This document shows, in pieces, positions 5,413-38,019 of a stretch of 64,000 nt of DNA; positions within the stretch are counted from its first letter, which is position 1, and each line of letters begins with the position of its first letter. This stretch comes from Auanema rhodensis. Lineage: Eukaryota; Animalia; Nematoda. The notes under the pieces are model-generated. The model saw nothing but the letters and a program-made list of their open reading frames with translations, had not been told where the DNA came from and searched no databases. A program made the position numbers and the translations under genes. The stretch lies in assembly GCA_964057225.1 (NCBI GenBank), contig OZ059895.1, forward strand, positions 7,998,001-8,062,000. Reading direction: 5' to 3'.

Positions 5413-7435
5413 ATATATCACTTTTTCGATCAGTCCCTCGTTATCTCTTTGCTAATAATCCTCCGTGGCTGTGTTTCAAAAAGAAAATATATAAAAGACA
5501 AGATGTCTCTCGTAAAACAAAATTTTCAAAAAATACGAAAATAACATGAAAATAAAATCAAAAATGTCTACTTACGTCTTGTTCGTTCTTGATGGGACTA
5601 CTACTTCAGCTAAAATAATCAGTAAAATATACCACTTTGTTCTACACTATTGAACAAAATGAGAATAAGATGATGACGTAAGAAGATGTTCAACTAAGAA
5701 AAAAAGACGACACAAGCATTATCACTTGAGTCTTGTTTTAACTATACGTATAGTATTCATATACATGTCTATATATGTATATATGAATGTATGATAAAGC
5801 TTACATATATACTTCATCGTTGTTTTCATGATGATAAGGAAAATTAAATAAAGAATGTCCTAAAACTCTAAGTAAGTAGTGATACTTCTCAGTTCGAATA
5901 GCTTTTCTGTTAATTCAAGTCTCTCTACTGGACTTTGAGTTCGACGTGAATAACAAGCGAGAAGACTATAGAAAAGCTTAACCAAAAAGGTTTGAAAAAA
6001 AATAAAAATGAATGAAATAATAGAAAGATAGAAACGATGGGAGACAAGAAGTATAAAGAAATTGAGAGAGAGGGTTAAAGAGAGAAATAGAGAGAGAGAG
6101 AGAAATAGAGAGAGAGAGAAATAGAGAGAGAGAGGTAGAAATAATGATATCAGGAATAAAGTAAAAAAGAAAAAGTATTTGAGAGAGAGAGAGAGAAAGT
6201 CTGGGAAACAAGATGAAATAAACTTAGTTTGGCATCAAAAGTTCTGACATAGTGTGAGTAAAGCATCATGAAAACTTAATAAAACTTGCATCAAAAAAAT
6301 GTCAAGCTTAATTGAGTATTGAATTGTTGGCGTTAAATATTATAATTCTTTCAATGCTAACATAACTTAAGTTAAGCACACGAAAGTAATAAAGTCAAAT
6401 CTGTTGGAGTTTTATTTTGTTTTGAATGAAACAAAAAATTGCACATTTTGGTTATCAAATCTTGATTCTCATATCGCAAAATTGCTCAGATGGATGGGAA
6501 AATCATGATAAAAAAACTTTGAGGGAAAAAATGAAAAAAAACGACACTACTTTGGGATGTATCAAGTCTGAAACATGAGGGGTGGAATCAGAGGTAGTTG
6601 AAGCTTCCAAAATGTTAAGCTTAAAATCCCAAGATCTGTCAAAAGAAGCCAGAAGCTGAGAAAACAGGATGTCAAAAGAGGGTTTACAGAATAATTGTTG
6701 TTGTTTTGTTTTTATTTTATTGTAAAGTATACAAAAACCAAAATGTTATAAGACTATTAAGCAAATGGCATTTTTAAGCGTCACAATTATGTTTTCATTT
6801 CCTGAAATACACAAATTTCTAAAGTAAAAGAAAATAAAATAGAAATATTATTTCCGATAATTAATTTGTGAAAAACGACAAAATGGCGAGGATATGTATA
6901 CAAATGATATGAATATTTGTTGAAATAACTCATCCAAATGATGAATATGCGTAACAAAAAGGTCAAAATGCTAGAAAATCTGTCAGAAAAGGTCAAGTTA
7001 CATCAATGAGTAGAAATAAAAATAGAAAAATACAAGAAAATTGATGGCGATAAGACGGATTCATGATGCTGAAACGATGTGAACGTAGACCATTAAGAGT
7101 CATATCTATGACTAGATAATGAAAACAGCCCCATGAGAATAAGTTCTTCACGTCAGTCAACCATCTTCCATCGAATTTAGTCGTTTTTTCGTGCATTTCT
7201 ATCTCAAATGAATGATACATCATGTATTGAGCAATTTTTGACTAGACATTTGTATATAACGATATCAGCATGATGATGTCATTGTAAATATTTCCACGTT
7301 TGAAAGCATCATAACATGACTTCTTACTTGACAGTTAGAATCATTCGATTGTATCATTTGTATTTCGTATAATTACATGTAAAAGTTATCTTTCCATTTA
7401 CATACATAGTTTTATGAATGAAAAACACTACAAGC

Positions 7436-7462
7436 ATGATGATGATGATGATGATGATGATG
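7436..7462. repeat. (GAT)n trinucleotide microsatellite
   Basis: The run tgatgatgatgatgatgatgatgatg is visible. Confidence 0.85.
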
Positions 7463-9276
7463 TCAACCACATCGCTATAGACAGCAATAGCAAAGATGAT
7501 GATGATGCTGCTACTCCTGTCGCTATTGCAAATGCTATGAGGGCGGTGAGATCGAAGAAGCTAATAGAGCTTCAGGAGATATGACGTAAAACATAATGCC
7601 TCAAGAGAAAGAGCCCATGGAATTGATTTTAAAGTCGACAAGAAGATAGACGGACGTACGGTGATCATCGTTATGCCATAGATATATTCACGACCAACAG
7701 CTGTGTCCCAGAAGGCAATAAAGCAGAAGAAACTGAAGAAAAGAAAAAAAAAGGAACGGGCGGAATAAATTTGTTTATCCTTTTTTGGTCAATTCGCTTT
7801 TTTTTTTCAAACAATTCTTTTCGCTTCAAAAATTTGTCCTGACTGACACCGCTTCTGTCCGTTTGGTTTATAAGCTCTAAAGTCTTCAACATCTCTACTT
7901 ATTCAAGGGCAATTGTAGATAAACTATTAGTTGAAAGTATGAAGATTTTCATTTAACAATTGAGAAAAACAACAGAGTTTTGTGGTGCCGTTAGGTACTC
8001 AGAATATATTTCTGTGTCTGCGCTTCATACATCTGCACTTCCCTATATGTGTCTTCAAATTATTCCAAATCTTGTCAGCGATTACCTCAGCTTTCTGATA
8101 TAATTCCTCTCGGAATTTGTGTTCTCTTAAGATTTGAGCACATTCTGAACATCTCAGATGATCCGCTCACATGAAGCTGAATCTTATTGCAGCTATCTTC
8201 CAACATCATTTCCTCTTTATTTCAAGGAAAAAAGAGGTTGGTAAGGCAATTGCCTAGGCTTAGTCAGAAAAGGCAAAGAGACGAAACAGGGGATTATGAA
8301 GAAAGTCCATGCTTTCCATTCTGTATGCTTACACTATTGAGGAGTAGCAGCCAAACACATACATACTCATCAAATTCATAAAATATCAGAAGAAAATCAA
8401 AACAGAAGATGGTGACGAAAAAAAAGAAAAATATAATCATCCCAAACATTCGTGCATAGCAAGTGCTCAAGCTCAACATTTACGAAGTAATTCATCAAAG
8501 AAATCATTCCTTTTCCGCTTTTTTTAAATCTATTTTGACCAATATTTGGAGTAAAAAAATAGGAAAACAAAGTAAAACGACGAGCTTTAGTCTTATAGGT
8601 TAAAAATAAGTTCGTTAAAGTTGTTATAATGATTGGAATAATTAAAAAAACACAAAATAAGACAGAACAAAACATAATTTTTTTGTTTTGCAGTAAAAAA
8701 TAATAAAGAAATACGAAAAAGATGCGTAAATTTGGCAATAAAGGGCTTTCCCTAGTATATGCTCATCTTATCATTAGCTTGACCTCGATAGGCCTTGTTG
8801 CCAAATTGAATTGAAGAATCGAGTGAGTTGTCGACGACTAGCGGTTTTCTCCTTTCTCTTTCTCCCATTCTTATTCTCCGAATTTCAGTCTCTTTCTCTT
8901 TAAAATTGATATGTTGTCCTCATTATAGCCTGAGGCAATTCAGCAAAAATTATATTAAAAATTTTATTCAACCTGATGACCATAAATTTGCAAAATACAT
9001 ATATGTATATAGATATATGAAAGAAAGATATATAAAGAAAGAAATTATATATATACTACTTTCACATCGATGTATCGGGTGTTGTTAATGACGAAAAATG
9101 AATGAAATGCTAGGATTTTGATGGTTTGTGAGAGCACACATCATGTACATGCTTATAAGTCGTGTCACATGCCATATACATATGTAGCTGTATTTTTGCT
9201 TCACAGATGTAATGAAGTGGTTGAACTCCTCCTTCCTACCTCTCTGACATTACCTCTTTCTTTCTCTCTCCCTCGC

Positions 9277-29976: not shown

Positions 29977-30681
<705 letters not shown>

Positions 30682-31148
30682 GATATTTTAAATACTATAT
30701 TGAATAACTCTAATAAGTAAAAATGCAAATATGTCAACGCGATTTATTGAGAACATATGTGATGATGATGATGGGATGATAATTTTTTTCAAAAAAAAAA
30801 ACTTATAAAAAAAACAAATAACAACTTGAGACTTGTGATATAAAGATATATGAATGCGTGACAAATTCCAGCCAAAAAAAGAGAAAATATATATAAAAAC
30901 GAAGTAGATATTGCTATAAAAGTTACTTGTCTAAAAAAGAACCTAGAATACATACAAGCTGTTGATTCCGAGAACTAAAATAGCATTGAGAAAGTACAAA
31001 TTTTTAAAAAAATAAAAACGAAAAATAAATTCCCATAAATCAATAGGATGTTTATATGTCAGGTTAATCTAGGTTAAATGGTAAATATTCAAATGAAATA
31101 TATTTACAGTACGCTCGTATTCACAAGTAAGTTAGTCTGCTTATATCA

Positions 31149-34100
31149 TCATCCTCTTAGTATTCTTACCACAGAATGATTGAGCACTACGTCTGTGTAG
31201 CCATTCTCTCTCCACAAAATCTTCTGGAAGAAGCCCGCCTGGCTGCGAGTTACGGTAATAATGACGATTATGGTGCTCCCAATCTAAACGTCCTTCGGAT
31301 GGATGGCAATGATCCATATGTTGACTGAAATTTTCATAAAACTTTAAAGCTATGTAAATTTCAACTCACTTATTTGTACTTCTAGATGGGAAGAAAGCAC
31401 CTTTCAGCATAGGTTTGTGCATAATATTATAAGAATCAGAATGATTGAATTCCCAACAAAGCTCGCATAAGTAAACGAGACAATCGATATCAGCACAGAA
31501 ATTACGGGTGTCAGCTTGTCCACAACCTTCACAAACCATAGATTCTTCCAAATATGGCTTTAGCTCTACCTACAATCAGCTAGCTTGAGAAGTCAAAAAT
31601 AAATGTAACTAACTGTCTTCTGTTGATCAACACTTGTTATAGCAATCTGACTAAGTCTAATAGCATAAACGTATTGCTCACGATTAGCAAAAACAGCACG
31701 CGCTGCTCCTTTCGGATATTCGGTAGAACTCTCAACCTGAAAACCATTCGTTTGCAAAAATACTGTATGATGTAGAATACTTCAATTGTAACAGACAAAA
31801 CTTCTCCAATTTCTTCAAATAAAAATGCAGCTAGCTCCGCTAATATATAATGAGTTAAAAAGTTGCATTACAAAATGATAAACCTGCAGTAGAAGTTCTA
31901 GGAACTCCCCCCATAAAAATAGCGAATCTCTCACTTCCACGATACTTGCCAGAAACCCAATAACGATCAGATTTACACCAAGGTCGGATTTGAACCTATA
32001 AATTAATAAGAAGATAATAACTCAAAAAATCTGAACTGACTATTTTTTCCACAAATATTTCAGGAAAAGTTAATTTCAAACAAAGTTTTCCCGGAGTGGA
32101 ACTGCATCTACTGATAAGACGACGCACAGAGTCAATACTAGCAAAGACTAAAAAGGCATATCCTGCTAAAAATAATGTTAGTGTTCTATAATTAATTATG
32201 TTGATACCTCTCGGCATATGAGGAGAACGCTCACGGTGAGGCCAATCGACTGTCACGTGACCAAAAACAGAGAAAAACTCACAGATTTCATCTGAATTTA
32301 AATGAATTAAATATTTATTTACTGAAATTTTAAGTACCTGCGGTTAAACCTTCAGGAAGCCCTCCTACAAATACTTTTCTAGAGTAGTCGACAGCATTGT
32401 CGTGGCTATACATGTAGCAATTGTTATCCAACACATTACCTAAGAAGATCATTTTTTGTTGAAGTTAAAAAATAGTCACTTGATCCAGAAAAAACGGTGT
32501 CATGATAACCGTAATTTCCCATTGTAAAATTATCCATCCTTCTGTCTTTCTGCGTTTCGCAAACTGAAAACTTTGTGTTACTATTCAAAGATTGTATACT
32601 CACTGTCTCTAGAACTTGAAGAAACACGTCTGGCAGGAGGCTTTCGCAATTCCTCGGATGGGCTAAAATGGAAGACAGTATAAAGTATGAAGGAGAAATA
32701 AACACCATGTTGTTTTTCCAAAGAAAGACCCTTTCTGCATTGGTTTATGCTCGTGACTTATACGGTTATTATGTACAAGAGACCAGCATTTATCACAAAT
32801 GTACAACAAACACTTGAGTTCAGCACAGAAATTACGTGTCTGAACCTTATTACAGTGTTCACAAGTCATATTCTCTTCGAGAAAAGGTTTCATTTCCATC
32901 TTAAAATATAGGCTATTATTATAAGTATGTATTAATTTACTTCTTTTTGCGATTCGCTGGAGAATATGCCAATGTGCCGTTTTGCAATTGCAGTTACGTA
33001 TGACTCGCGCTTACTGAATACAACACGAGCAGCTCCTTTAGGATATTCAGTTTCAATATCAACCTGGCGTAATATTGGTTGAAGACGAGAAGAATTATAA
33101 CTGTCAAACCTCAATATTAACGATTACAACATTTCCAATATAACCATTTATAAGATTCGCTAATTGGCAAGCGGTTGCGGTTCTTGGTACTCCCCCAAGA
33201 AACACCGAGTAGCGAGCCGTAACAGCATCGATTTTATCGTCTTTCCACACTCTGTCAGCATTTCTCCATGGTCTGACTTGAACCTGAAATATTTCAACTT
33301 ATATGAAATCACCTTATTTAATTACTGTTTTAGGACGAGAAGCACTATCCTCCATTTGAATGCATAATCTTCCTTGGAAAAAAAGACAGTTATTAATTAC
33401 AGTCGGAACTGCTTCAGCTGACGTAAAAATTAGGAAAGCATAGCCTAAAATATACTAACGTTAATATTTATTGTCTACGGTTGTAAAACCTTTAGGATAT
33501 TCATCAGACTGCTTTCGATGAGGCCAGTCAACTTTAACTTCCCCGAATCTCATAAAAAAATTGCAAAGTTCCCCTGAGCATAAATGTTGTGAATAAAATT
33601 TCTGAAAGAACACCCTCACCTGACGACATCCCTTCAGGGACTCCTCCAATAAAAACTTTTCTAGAAAACTCAGCCGAATTTTCCCTGACCTGCATTAGAA
33701 TGTCCATAACCTCCAGTTCGTGGTCCTTGTCAATAACTATACAGAAATTGAAGATGGGTCATAATTATTCAACGTACGATCAGAGCTGGAGCCATCAACA
33801 ACGAGAGTAGAATCCGAAATTTTGGAGCAGGGAGAGTTATCTATACAAAATAAAGAATCTTATACTTCAAGGATTAATATTTACCAAAATTAAACTGGTT
33901 ACAAAAATTGGACATTGATGACATGATAGCATTATCACTTGTTTCTGGAAATAATTAATATTTATAAGTAGTGCTTTTTAGATTCGGCACCATTAGGAGT
34001 ATAAAATTTCGGCCGTGTTCTATAACAAGCAGTAAAACTGTTTGTTACTGGTAACTCAGCGTCACAGAAAACTGGAGCTAAACATTTTCAAATAAGTTCT

Positions 34101-34596
34101 GATCAAACTAATGCAAAACTTTACAAAAAGCATGTCGATCAGTTGACGATAATGGCGATGACGATGATGAGAATGTCTGAGTATGAGAACGATTTTCAAT
34201 CGGAAATTCTAAAAGAAGTAAGATCCTACTTTGTCGACCTTTGTATTTTTACCGTAAGAAGTATGCTCTTGGGACGAAATTCGATTTTCTCCACCTTCTT
34301 TGCATAAAATGGAGTGCTGCTCAGAGCCTTCTATAATTGTAATGAACATTTAGGTATTTTCAACTGAACACCGTTAGAATTGTTTTCCATTCCGTGCTTC
34401 TCCAAAGATTTGTTAAAGCTGACTTGTTGTCCGAACCCGGCCTCATTTTTGCAAGGCGATTCATCACTGACTGAGAAGCTGGACATCATTGCTAAAATAC
34501 TTTATTTTCCTAATTATATAAAAACTTCCAACATGTTATTTGGTCCATTCTCGGATATGTCGAGTAGAAATGATCCCAACTGCCCAAGCTGTCCAT
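31149..34596 (-). CDS. CPEB-family RNA-binding protein (cpb-1/cpb-2/fog-1 group) with two tandem RRM1-RRM2-ZZ modules
   Basis: Module 1 (~33664-32720): SRKVFIGGVP, VDWPH, GYAFLIF, VQVRPW, FLGGVPR, EYPKGAARVVF, CEHC..RNFCAELKCLLYICDKCWSLVH..HKP. Module 2 (~32382-31385): SRKVFVGGLP, VDWPH, GYAFLVF, VQIRPW, FMGGVPR, EYPKGAARAVF, CEGC..RNFCADIDCLVYLCELCWEFNH..HKP. The family call is strong. One gene versus two, and the last exon, are less certain. Confidence 0.85.
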
Positions 34597-35208
34597 ATTG
34601 GTTGATCATTAAACAATAAAACTAAATCAAAAAAAGTTTTTAAAAGTTTAAAAAAAAAACTTTAAGTGCTTAAATTTTAAGTTCTAGAGAATCAATACTC
34701 TTTAAATAATACGAGAATACCCGCCCATTTGTAATTTCGTTATGAGACAGATGAAGCTCAATTTGCATACTGTATTTACAACTGTAGTATTTTGAAATTA
34801 GAATACAGTATAGGTCACATGATGTCTGGGAGCATGTTTACGATGCTGTAAAATTTAAATTTGTATTAAAGAACATAATACTCAATGAACGGTTGCTATG
34901 TTAATGTTTTTTATAAAATAGATTTTTATGTATATATATTATATATGAAAAAAAATAAGATAATGTCACGAGGTATTATTCATTTTTTTAAGTTTAAGTG
35001 ATGAGCAAGAATCATATGACGATGCGAACAATTTTTCGGGAAGTAATCTATATATCTTACAACATAATTTGCACGGCAAAGGATTGTATTTTGTCAAAAC
35101 CGATTTAATGATGATTAAGTAAACCAAAATTATTATGTTTCTCTAATCAATCAGTGTTCAGATCATTATAATCGTATATCAAAAGTTGTGCTATTATACG
35201 AGCACCAT

Positions 35209-38019
35209 TCAAGATCGGCCTGATTGGACCAAATTTGATTCCAGTTGGGATTCTAAAATAGCTAGCTTGTGCTTGAGCTCTTCTTTTCTTTCCGCGTTAG
35301 TTTCTGTTGATACTTCATATTGGAGCTGATATACATCTTCCATTAATCTGCCTACATTGGAACTATCTGGCTCGTTCATCTTAATAATCCTACTTAATAG
35401 GTTAATTTTTTTCAAGACTTACTTCAAGCTCATCTACTTCCATTGGATCTTCGTGTTTGAATGCTGCCTCCTTTAATCGGATCTGATCAATAATTTCCTC
35501 TGTAAGGGCTTCGGGTACAGGTTGCAACTTTGGAACAACTCCTACAACATCAGGGAAGGTAGAAACATATGGAGGTAAGGTTGTTGTAGTTGTAGGTACT
35601 GATGTAGTAGTGGTAGGTGGTAATGTTGTAGTGGTAGGTGGTAATGTTGTAGTGGTAGATGGTAATGTCGTAGTGGTAGGTGGTAATGTCGTAGTCGTAG
35701 GTGGTAATGTCGTAGTGGTAGATGGTACTGTCGTAGTGGTAGGTGCTGATGTAGTGGTCATTGGTGTTGTAGTTGCTGGTATTTCTGTTGTTTGTTCTGT
35801 AGTAGTGGTTGTTTCAGGAATAGGTGTTGTTCTGGTATAATGATAAGGTCTGAATGTGGTGAGTTTTGCTGGAATGAATGTGGAGAAAATTCTGTTGGCC
35901 CGATGATAGTCGAATGGAGGTGCTGTTCTCAGTGTGTACCGAACTCGCTCATAAAAACGATAGCGTGTTGTTTTTGGAACTTCTGTAGTGGTTGGGAAAG
36001 TTCTCCAATTTCGTGTGGTTGATGGTTCAGTTGTCACAATTGGTAGGGTCCGTGTTGTGGTTTCAGGATATGTTACAGGTGATTGAGTTGTGGTAGTTGT
36101 AGTAGTTGTTCTTCTTGTAGTTGTCCAAAATGGTCTTCTGAATCTTCTTGTAGAAACAGGAACATTAGCCTCCCAATTGAATGAAGGATGTCTGATCAAG
36201 GTTGCAAAGGTTGATGGCGTTCTAGCGGTAGATGTGGTAGTAGGCATCTCTGTTGTAGTAGTAGTCGTCATTCTGGGCTCTATTGTAGTAGTAGTCGTTG
36301 TTCTGGGCAATTCTCGGAATGGATGGCGAATGCTTAAAAAACGGCGCAGTAGGTATTTGAAATATGGCGCAGCTTTACCGTTTTCCAATAACAAATGGTC
36401 TAGGAGTCACCCTATTGTCAAGCTGCCGATTGCGATCAGGGAATTGATTCCATGATGGCCTTTGAAATACGAAAAACGGCTGTTCACGATTTTTCGTGAA
36501 CTGTCTTCTCTAAGAAAAAACATCATTAGAATTGAATTTCTTGAATGAAAATTACATTATCAAAGGAATTGCGGTTGAATTGGTTTGAAAATCTCTGAAA
36601 ATATAACATTTAAATGTTATCATTGTCTACTGATGTGAAGAAACTAAAGCTGAAATGTTTAAACAAGAAAATGCTGGTGACGGGTGAAATGTATATTGGT
36701 CGCAGAATATTTAAGTCCAAGTTCAAGAATGAAACCTACTTGTGAATCAGTTGTTGTTCTTTCAGTTGTAGATGTGGTAGGAGTTTCAGTTGTTGTGGTC
36801 AAAGTAGTTGCAGTGAGTGGCTCTTTTGTTACATAATGAAACCTAGCTTCTGGGATGTATTTTACACGATTTCTTCGCCAATATGGCTGTTCAGTTGTGC
36901 TGGACGTTTCCGATAGAATTGGGATTATGGTTGATGAAAGGTACTCAACGTGACCATTCGGTTCCACTCTCACAAAATATCGAAGAGGTTGCTGAAATTG
37001 TTACGTTGTGAATGACATTGACAAGCTTTTCGTTCTGCTTTAAGATATGTGGTTTTGCTTCTATTAGCCAAGAAAAAAATTCGCATTAACAGTAAGTGAA
37101 ACCAATATGATTTGATGAACTTGAAGAGTTTATGGTTTTTAAAAACTGATTTGATGAGTGTGAACGATCAAGATATAATGATAGAATGTTAGCAGCTTTT
37201 TCATCTACTAATTTTACAAAATAAACTTCGTAATCTAGACATTTTGCAGCCACTATAATCTTAAAATGATTTATACAATAAGCTATTCTTAAAATAATAT
37301 CTTTTAGTTCAACTTTCTAATAGGGTACATTGTTGCCAAAAGATAGTATTTAGATTACGAAAAAAGTCTGAGATAGTAAGATATTAATGTCAAAATACCA
37401 AATACACAAGGAATAGAATAAGAGAGAGAAACGATTTTAGAGAGTTGTAGAAAGGGGGGGGGGGGGAATAAGATGGAGGCAAGCCTAAGAACGTAAATTG
37501 ATAATGGACCTAACACTAACAATGAAATGATTTCTTTGTTCTTTATCACTTGGAAATAAAAAAAATGAATTCAATTAATACTAAAGGAAAGAATATAATT
37601 AAATATAAAATCACAAAAACGTTCTTCATATGTTACTTGTTGAAAAACTTGACGGCAAGTATCCCATCTACTTTTTATAAACGTAATTCTATCTTCACTT
37701 ACACATTGTTATATTCTAATAGACTGTTGATTGAAAATAAATACATTTCTTGATTTTCTTGAAGAAACAAATAAGTAATCTTCAAAAAACTTTCTATGTT
37801 TTTATTACTATGATGTACGCTTTCAGATCGAAAATGATTCTTCTCGCCTGATTGTTTCCCGGTTTAATTAAAAGATAAGAAGAAATATTATTTATAAATT
37901 GTAAAGTGCAAAGGAAATAAAAAAAAGAGATCAGATGTATGAAAAAGATTAAAACTCATACTTACCGAACTATGAGATTGAACTGAATAGATGAAGAAGA
38001 GAAGCAGTAGCATCTTCAT
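35209..38019 (-). CDS. Secreted Thr/Pro-rich mucin-like protein with a charged, possibly coiled-coil C-terminus
   Basis: Signal peptide exon MKMLLLLFFIYSVQSHSS (38019-37966, GTAAGT donor). Phase-consistent exons lead into long TTT/PTT-rich ORFs and a final exon MNEPD...LESNLVQSGRS*. Confidence 0.8.
35575..35760 (-). repeat. 21-bp coding tandem repeat encoding (TTTTLPP)n
   Basis: gtagtggtaggtggtaatgtt/c units are visible on the + strand. Confidence 0.85.

Follow-up and report, generated by a model that had tools for sequence, protein, structure and literature searches.

A CPEB gene with two RRM-RRM-ZZ cassettes spliced into one mRNA in the nematode Auanema rhodensis

A 64,000-nt stretch of the Auanema rhodensis genome (GCA_964057225.1, contig OZ059895.1, positions 7,998,001 to 8,062,000; hereafter the window, whose numbering is used throughout) carries on its minus strand a CPEB gene with two RNA-binding cassettes, or heads, each of the layout RRM1-RRM2-ZZ. 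Its coding region, read by three-frame translation of 31000-34700, lies at 31141-34596. Very probably this is one gene whose one mRNA encodes a CPEB of 832 residues, with two intact cassettes derived from a duplication at the DNA level, and not a pair of tandem paralogs. The layout of CPEBs, a variable N-terminus followed by one RRM-RRM-ZZ cassette, is treated as invariant across animals, and a recent phylogeny of the family expects CEBP_ZZ once per protein, as phylogenetic pipelines assume (PMC10284499). The double CPEB of Auanema is a domain duplication within this well-known family, expressed in one mRNA and long kept intact in two species. A literature search found no paper on a two-cassette CPEB, nor one on CPEBs in Auanema. 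The first-pass annotation of this locus had taken the architecture to be undescribed; no published description was found, but an unnamed prediction from A. melissense and one sponge gene model were already public.

Results

Transcription of both cassettes in one mRNA

Both cassettes are transcribed and spliced into one mRNA, as supported by four public runs (X1-X4), the only public runs in which the locus occurs. The four runs contain about half of the sampled locus words and their contigs are without introns; they are therefore complementary DNA (cDNA) and not genomic DNA. In each run one contig crosses the whole locus (2842, 2843, 2820, and 2620 nt for X1-X4, respectively), from about 30825 to about 34623, with zero mismatches to the window. 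On refinement, all fifteen listed contig joints correspond to GT..AG introns of 40-46 nt; the N-terminal introns make up seven more. The ZZ domain of cassette 1 is connected to RRM1 of cassette 2 by the joints of exons 12-13, 13-14, and 14-15. The first two of these are cis-spliced in 4/4 runs, in a contig without break or branch, and record positions 1119 and 1449 are separated by 329 nt, which correspond to exons of 84, 102, 84, and 59 nt, exact to the base. The earlier proposal that the cassettes splice into one protein is thus supported by contigs joining them over the linker introns in all four runs, by the 832-codon frame, and by a 23-exon ortholog in Auanema sp. JU1783.

The spliced translation from ATG 34596 contains one terminal stop only, after 832 codons (Table 1). 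This start codon is supported by the length and depth of the contigs and by the ortholog, whose exon 1 is matched by the first exon, MDSLGSWDHFYSTYPRMDQIT; it is paired with a first intron of 41 nt (34492-34532). An alternative start at ATG 34489 (810 aa), with a first intron of 34 nt, was dropped on comparison with the ortholog and on contig depth and length. The gene had been annotated at 31149-34596, of which the start agrees with the ortholog's first exon and the end falls a few bases short of the TAA at 31143-31141. The 5′ end of the transcript is an estimate from the length and depth of the contigs. The seven N-terminal introns were placed by three criteria: a total length of 263 nt for six of them, the open frame, and exon lengths that differ from those of JU1783 by multiples of 3 only.

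Three observations concern the 5′ end. An out-of-frame ATG occurs within the transcribed 5′ end at 34609, 13 nt ahead of the start codon. A TTTAG acceptor-like site is found at 34626-34622, where the contigs stop (~34621-34632 region). In run X2, a short part of the contig is non-genomic and might be the remnant of a spliced leader.

Table 1. Features of the double CPEB gene in the window.
Feature	Position	Strand	Description
Whole transcript	30825..34623	-	23 exons, 22 GT-AG introns of 40-47 nt; extent covered by cDNA contigs
Coding region	31141..34596	-	832 codons, then TAA stop at 31143-31141
N-terminal region, exons 1-7	33737..34596	-	about 185 aa ahead of cassette 1; invariant motif FPIENRSHTQTFSSSSSPLSSTD
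Cassette 1, RRM1-RRM2-ZZ, exons 8-13	32706..33736	-	ZZ exon 32706-32899
Linker intron 1	32663..32705	-	43 nt, GT..AG; joint 32662/32706; spliced out in 4/4 runs
Linker exon 14	32604..32662	-	59 nt, encodes ..PSEELRKPPARRVSSSSRD
Linker intron 2	32564..32603	-	40 nt, GTGAGT..TTTTCAG; joint 32563/32604; cis-spliced in 4/4 runs
Linker exon 15	32480..32563	-	84 nt; JU1783 counterpart 84 nt
Linker intron 3 as used	32440..32479	-	40 nt, GTGACT..CTTAG; joint 32437/32478, cut +2, 4/4 runs
Linker end and cassette 2, RRM1-RRM2-ZZ, exons 16-22	31370..32439	-	ZZ exon 31370-31569
C-terminal tail, exon 23	31141..31324	-	terminal CGKNTKRMMI conserved
3′ untranslated region	30825..31140	-	unusually conserved vs JU1783

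Integrity of the two cassettes

Against the CEBP_ZZ profile of Pfam, for which the cut-off is 29.8 bits, the ZZ exons scored 60.9 bits (cassette 1) and 62.8 bits (cassette 2). The RRM exons of both cassettes gave partial matches to RRM_7, the best being 26.4 bits for one 41-aa exon of cassette 2. The two full, diverged cassettes that had been noticed in the sequence are thereby confirmed, with CEBP_ZZ above the cut-off twice and partial RRM_7 in both. Over 251 aligned residues the cassettes are 48.6% identical. They have five intron positions in common, phases included, and cassette 2 has an extra phase-1 intron at TA|AE (31840-31883); the first-pass annotation had described the shared positions, and this one exception, correctly.

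When the cassettes were aligned with 34 single-cassette CPEBs, 49 columns were conserved to at least 90%, and these were defined as family-invariant. Cassette 1 keeps 47/49 of these residues and cassette 2 keeps 49/49, with the same outcome in A. melissense; both departures in cassette 1 are Leu to Val. The RNP motifs KVF[IV]GG, GYAFL[IV]F, [FM]GGVPR, and PKGAAR were found in both heads, and the ZZ ligands, six Cys and two His (C13, C16, C25, C30, C35, C38, H43, H51), are invariant in both copies. Both cassettes also align to solved RRM12 structures, CPEB4 being the best (147.9 bits) and CPEB1 reaching 87.5 bits. To judge from these residues, neither head resembles a decaying copy and both are intact. 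By homology the protein belongs with the CPEBs, having tandem RRMs of the CPEB type and a CEBP_ZZ domain right after RRM2; where the family has a single cassette, it has two in one open reading frame (ORF). The kept invariant residues indirectly predict sequence-specific binding to U-rich cytoplasmic polyadenylation elements (CPEs) and control of the poly(A) tail or of translation.

An ortholog in Auanema melissense

A search of 1.84 billion representative proteins with a profile built from the two ZZ exons gave 337 matches. Among the best 150 of these 337, only two proteins (P0001 and P0003) had two ZZ matches. P0001 (807 aa) falls in one cluster with P0263 (808 aa); the two are CAI4230197.1/CAI4230198.1, each an 'unnamed protein product' of Auanema sp. 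JU1783, a strain of A. melissense (PMC11796466). By Pfam, each of them has two RRM_7 and two CEBP_ZZ domains; in P0263 the two copies of RRM_7 score 161.6 bits and RRM_1 is found in three copies. The ortholog thus shows, in one ORF, the doubled RRM_7 and CEBP_ZZ domains that would mark such a protein, and the same fusion is present in a related nematode at a syntenic position. The JU1783 locus (L001; GCA_943334845.2) is collinear with the window for ~20 kb, in inverted orientation.

As in the window, the JU1783 gene consists of 23 exons and 22 GT-AG introns of 40-47 nt, among them the same three linker introns. Every difference in exon length between the two species is divisible by 3, and the linker-spanning exons measure 59/84/102 nt in the window vs. 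53/84/99 nt in JU1783 (6, 0, and 3 nt apart). Amino-acid identity is 85.7% for cassette 1 and 88.0% for cassette 2. The A. melissense protein, an automatic prediction without a name, differs in its N-terminus (50%), linker (33%, with in-frame indels only), and C-terminal tail (44%), of which the last 10 residues (CGKNTKRMMI) are identical. Since synonymous sites are saturated between the species (proportion of synonymous differences, pS, 0.8-0.94), we give pN and pS and no classical dN/dS. The proportion of non-synonymous differences (pN) was 0.085 for cassette 1, 0.077 for cassette 2, 0.282 for the N-terminus, and 0.377 for the linker. The 22 orthologous introns, those of the linker included, are 48% identical, which is the random level (shuffled control, 55%). 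These values show that both heads have been under equally strong purifying selection since the species split.

P0001 and P0263 are one Ala apart (MPRGYAF vs. MPRAGYAF) at an exon start in the L001:10387 region. The difference looks like an NAGNAG alternative acceptor, and the cDNA contigs of the window have the Ala form. Three motifs outside the cassettes are invariant between the species, namely FPIENRSHTQTFSSSSSPLSSTD (exon 4, ~34125-34208), RRVSSSS (exon 14), and CGKNTKRMMI (31141-31175); such short motifs are candidate partner or phosphorylation sites.

The equal constraint on the heads bears on whether both of them bind RNA. In CPEBs, ZZ domains and RNA-binding regions have been reported in protein contacts and in dimerisation (for the ZZ domain, work cited in PMC10284499), and one head of a single gene could have been re-used, e.g., for protein interaction or autoinhibition, leaving one head only to bind RNA; alternatively, single-head isoforms could dominate. 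With 49% identity between them the heads could differ in specificity, and contigs lose rare isoforms. We nevertheless consider this account improbable, as virtually all family-invariant residues, including the RNP motifs, are kept in both heads, which moreover evolve at equally low rates (pN 0.085 vs. 0.077), and as the JU1783 annotation lists two isoforms only, which are one residue apart (807 and 808 aa).

The linker and its reading frame

The linker between the cassettes has about 63 residues, is rich in Ser, Arg, Asp, and Asn, and is poorly conserved. Three linker introns had been predicted from the sequence. Two of them, 32663-32705 and 32564-32603, are identical to those that the contigs remove, whereas in place of the third (32406-32439, 34 nt) the contigs remove 32440-32479. 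The stretch 32406-32439 is a genuine phase-compatible GT..AG stretch, yet it is unused in the cDNA contigs. As spliced, the linker reads ...HDTVFSGSSNVLDNNCYMYSHDNAVDYSRKVF and not ...DYFLTSTKNDLLSHDNAV, as given earlier. The frame through the linker is open with either third intron, and the single open frame claimed by the first-pass annotation therefore held once that intron was corrected; across the linker the spliced sequence reads ...KGSFFGKTTCPSEELRKPPARRVSSSSRDICETQKDRRMDNFTMGNYGYHDTVFSGSSNVLDNNCYMYSHDNAVDYSRKVFVGG..., uninterrupted. Also as previously stated, the sense strand of the linker is free of AATAAA; the gene has only three, all intronic (34506, 33472, and 32319). The RRVSSSS motif of exon 14, which is kept in JU1783, is basophilic-kinase-like and might be a phosphorylation site.

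By a rough estimate from base composition, a random frame of 63 codons at 32% GC (about 7.6% stop codons) would be open ~0.7% of the time. That the linker frame is open in both species despite this low chance is strong evidence for translation of the linker, and thus for the two heads being one polypeptide.

These data also bear on the view that the cassettes are two ordinary tandem CPEB paralogs, as separate genes or in an operon, and that the joined contig is a read-through product or an assembly chimera. In the operon version, the downstream gene would be trans-spliced at TTTTCAG 32564 and start at the ATG of MDNF, and an ATG in the frame of cassette 2 does lie 26 nt past this acceptor. If linker intron 1 is retained, the first frame stops at TAG 32665-32663; with intron 1 spliced but intron 2 retained, the frame stops after ...RDSEYTIFE; and single molecules cannot be shown from contigs. 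We regard separate paralogs as very improbable all the same. Exons 12-13 and 13-14 are cis-spliced in every run on an unbroken contig, and no AATAAA separates the cassettes. In both species, between which silent sites are saturated, the frame runs open through the linker; the linker exons differ in length by 6, 0, and 3 nt only, and the linker's pN of 0.377 is well under saturation. The public annotation of JU1783 likewise gives one gene.

Origin of the duplication

A maximum-likelihood tree was made of 40 cassettes with one CPEB1-like outgroup; searches aimed at FOG-1 and CPB-2 of Caenorhabditis had yielded CPB-1 orthologs only. Cassette 1 of both species was sister to cassette 2 of both species, with moderate support (91/60), and the stems of the two clades were long (0.78 and 0.87, respectively). 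Nearest to the cassette pair was a protein of Heterorhabditis (86/70). The cassettes of the double CPEB fell inside a nematode clade (100/99) together with single-cassette proteins of Pristionchus, Haemonchus, Acrobeloides, filariae, and Plectus. With the one CPEB1-like outgroup, this long-branched clade was sister to the CPEB2 + CPB-1 clade and not inside it; the best non-nematode matches were CPEB2/3. The Caenorhabditis CPB-1 clade was separate (100/100) and neither cassette fell there; of the comparison with CPB-1, CPB-2, and FOG-1 that had been proposed, it is the CPB-1 part that was run, and it places the cassettes outside. The CPB-1 clade also contains P0321 (433 aa), a conventional single-cassette CPEB of Auanema sp. 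JU1783. Since A. melissense has this CPB-1-type protein as well, the double gene is an addition and not a replacement.

An old duplication, as had been suggested, is supported by both the common intron positions and the sister relationship of the cassettes. Because intron positions are shared by the cassettes, the duplication was one at the DNA level: the cassette was duplicated in tandem within the gene, or the whole gene was, and the two copies then fused. These sequences date it before the split of A. rhodensis and A. melissense.

Two other proteins were tried as doubles and rejected. P0152, from Heterorhabditis (464 bits vs. P0001), has one cassette only, to which both heads match, and its gene model is incomplete, without the ZZ exon. 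The halves of P0003 (464 aa, two ZZ matches) are exact repeats, typical of assembly duplication. P0003, with its identical ZZ repeats, shows that artefacts occur in public protein sets, and a double model from a sponge (P0151) is unverified, but an assembly or annotation artefact in Auanema (a haplotype that was collapsed or duplicated, or gene models that were merged) is effectively refuted already by cassettes that are merely 49% identical and by an arrangement found in two independent assemblies and in mismatch-free cDNA contigs.

The 3′ untranslated region and neighboring sequences

The 3′ untranslated region (3′UTR; about 30800-31140, corresponding to L001:11384-11728) is 83% identical to that of A. 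melissense, vs. 48% for introns, 55% for shuffled controls, and 58% for the upstream 300 nt. It contains perfectly conserved blocks of 14-33 nt. Conserved motifs are UGUAAAUA (PUF-type core) at 31108, ACUAAC at 31136, and UUUUAU at 31017 and 30921. This extreme conservation marks the double CPEB mRNA as itself a target of heavy regulation. Shortly downstream is the end of a convergent zf-C2H2 gene, and part of the conserved block could serve both genes. A scan of 30000-35200 with Rfam gave no match at E up to 0.1.

A minus-strand open frame of 330 aa (35402-36394) closely precedes the CPEB gene; it is mucin-like and dominated by threonine runs and TTTTLPP-type repeats. At the syntenic place in JU1783 (L001 about 6000-7500) a weak match to this frame was found.

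Discussion

Several points weigh against one gene encoding a two-headed CPEB. Contigs show presence and not absence, and single molecules spanning all exons are beyond their proof; there may be minor isoforms, either stopping after cassette 1 or trans-spliced at TTTTCAG (32564) with a start at the following ATG (MDNF...). All four runs are from one study. The N-terminal introns are a less certain part of the model than the remainder, and the double protein of JU1783 is an automatic prediction, not an experimental product. Approximately unbiased (AU) tests did not reject the grouping of Heterorhabditis with either cassette (p 0.29 and 0.34), and the duplication may have come before or after the split from Heterorhabditis. 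Finally, bivalent RNA binding is something we infer from sequence.

One gene with a two-headed product remains our preferred reading, and a mechanism may be proposed for it. The duplicated gene is a member of a lineage of nematode CPEBs whose proteins in Pristionchus, strongylids, filariae, Acrobeloides, and Plectus are single-cassette. Like the cassettes of canonical CPEBs, each head probably binds a CPE-type element rich in U, and the linker, variable and prone to indels, is probably a flexible tether. The protein would then be a covalent CPEB 'dimer', able to read two elements on one 3′UTR or to bridge two mRNAs, and the tethered heads would increase avidity or make translational control depend on the presence of two sites. 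In C. elegans, the CPEB2-type proteins FOG-1 and CPB-1 decide sperm fate and progression. Both have been placed in the CPEB2 subfamily (PMC10284499), whose members have testis and sperm functions (PMC10284499; PMC5536308). By this family analogy a germline role is likely, and the germline is the most likely site of action. That the two diverged heads form a functional covalent dimer reading different or paired 3′UTR elements, and that they provide a new combinatorial germline control in Auanema, is a tentative idea that we think rather unlikely to hold in full. If true, the double CPEB could have a part in controlling how this three-sexed lineage makes sperm and oocytes, in its females and hermaphrodites as well as in its males.

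The gene is of interest as a natural experiment on the valency of CPE recognition, i.e., on how a tether affects affinity, spacing rules, and the choice of targets. The genus Auanema is a model for sex determination and for unusual sperm and oocyte programmes, and in C. elegans spermatogenesis is controlled by relatives within the protein family. Auanema is accessible to CRISPR, and the small size of the gene makes head-deletion alleles and per-head binding assays feasible.

Among known proteins, the closest besides the A. melissense ortholog are the nematode CPEBs of the same clade. P0152 (Heterorhabditis bacteriophora, A0A1I7X..), GMR37328.1 (P0002; Pristionchus mayeri), Bm9082 (P0012; Brugia malayi, 'CPEB2, putative'), P0011 (Haemonchus contortus), and the proteins of Plectus and Acrobeloides are 48-58% identical to each cassette. 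They have one RRM-RRM-ZZ cassette (in P0152, as far as the incomplete model shows), in contrast to two in Auanema. The only other predicted protein found with two RRM_7 and two CEBP_ZZ domains is Em0013g172a of the sponge Ephydatia muelleri (P0151, 639 aa). Its cassettes are from different deep branches, cassette 1 being close to the CPEB1-like outgroup and cassette 2 falling on the side of CPEB2; this unverified gene model is either an independent event (a CPEB1-CPEB2 fusion) or two neighboring genes merged by the predictor. A CPEB2-like protein of the barnacle Pollicipes pollicipes (P0153, isoform X2, 825 aa) has two RRM_7 matches (243.9 bits) and one ZZ, and is possibly a partial internal duplication.

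Members of the CPEB2 subfamily (vertebrate CPEB2-4 and Drosophila Orb2) resemble the Auanema protein in having tandem RRMs of the CPEB type directly before the ZZ domain; the canonical proteins have one C-terminal cassette, however, vs. two in the Auanema gene. In function, the analogy would be with vertebrate oocytes. In the Xenopus model of repression by CPE clusters, and in the dimerisation of CPEB1, two CPEB units come together on neighboring U-rich elements. The vertebrate dimers on paired CPEs are non-covalent and formed by separate polypeptides, whereas in Auanema the two units would be parts of one chain.

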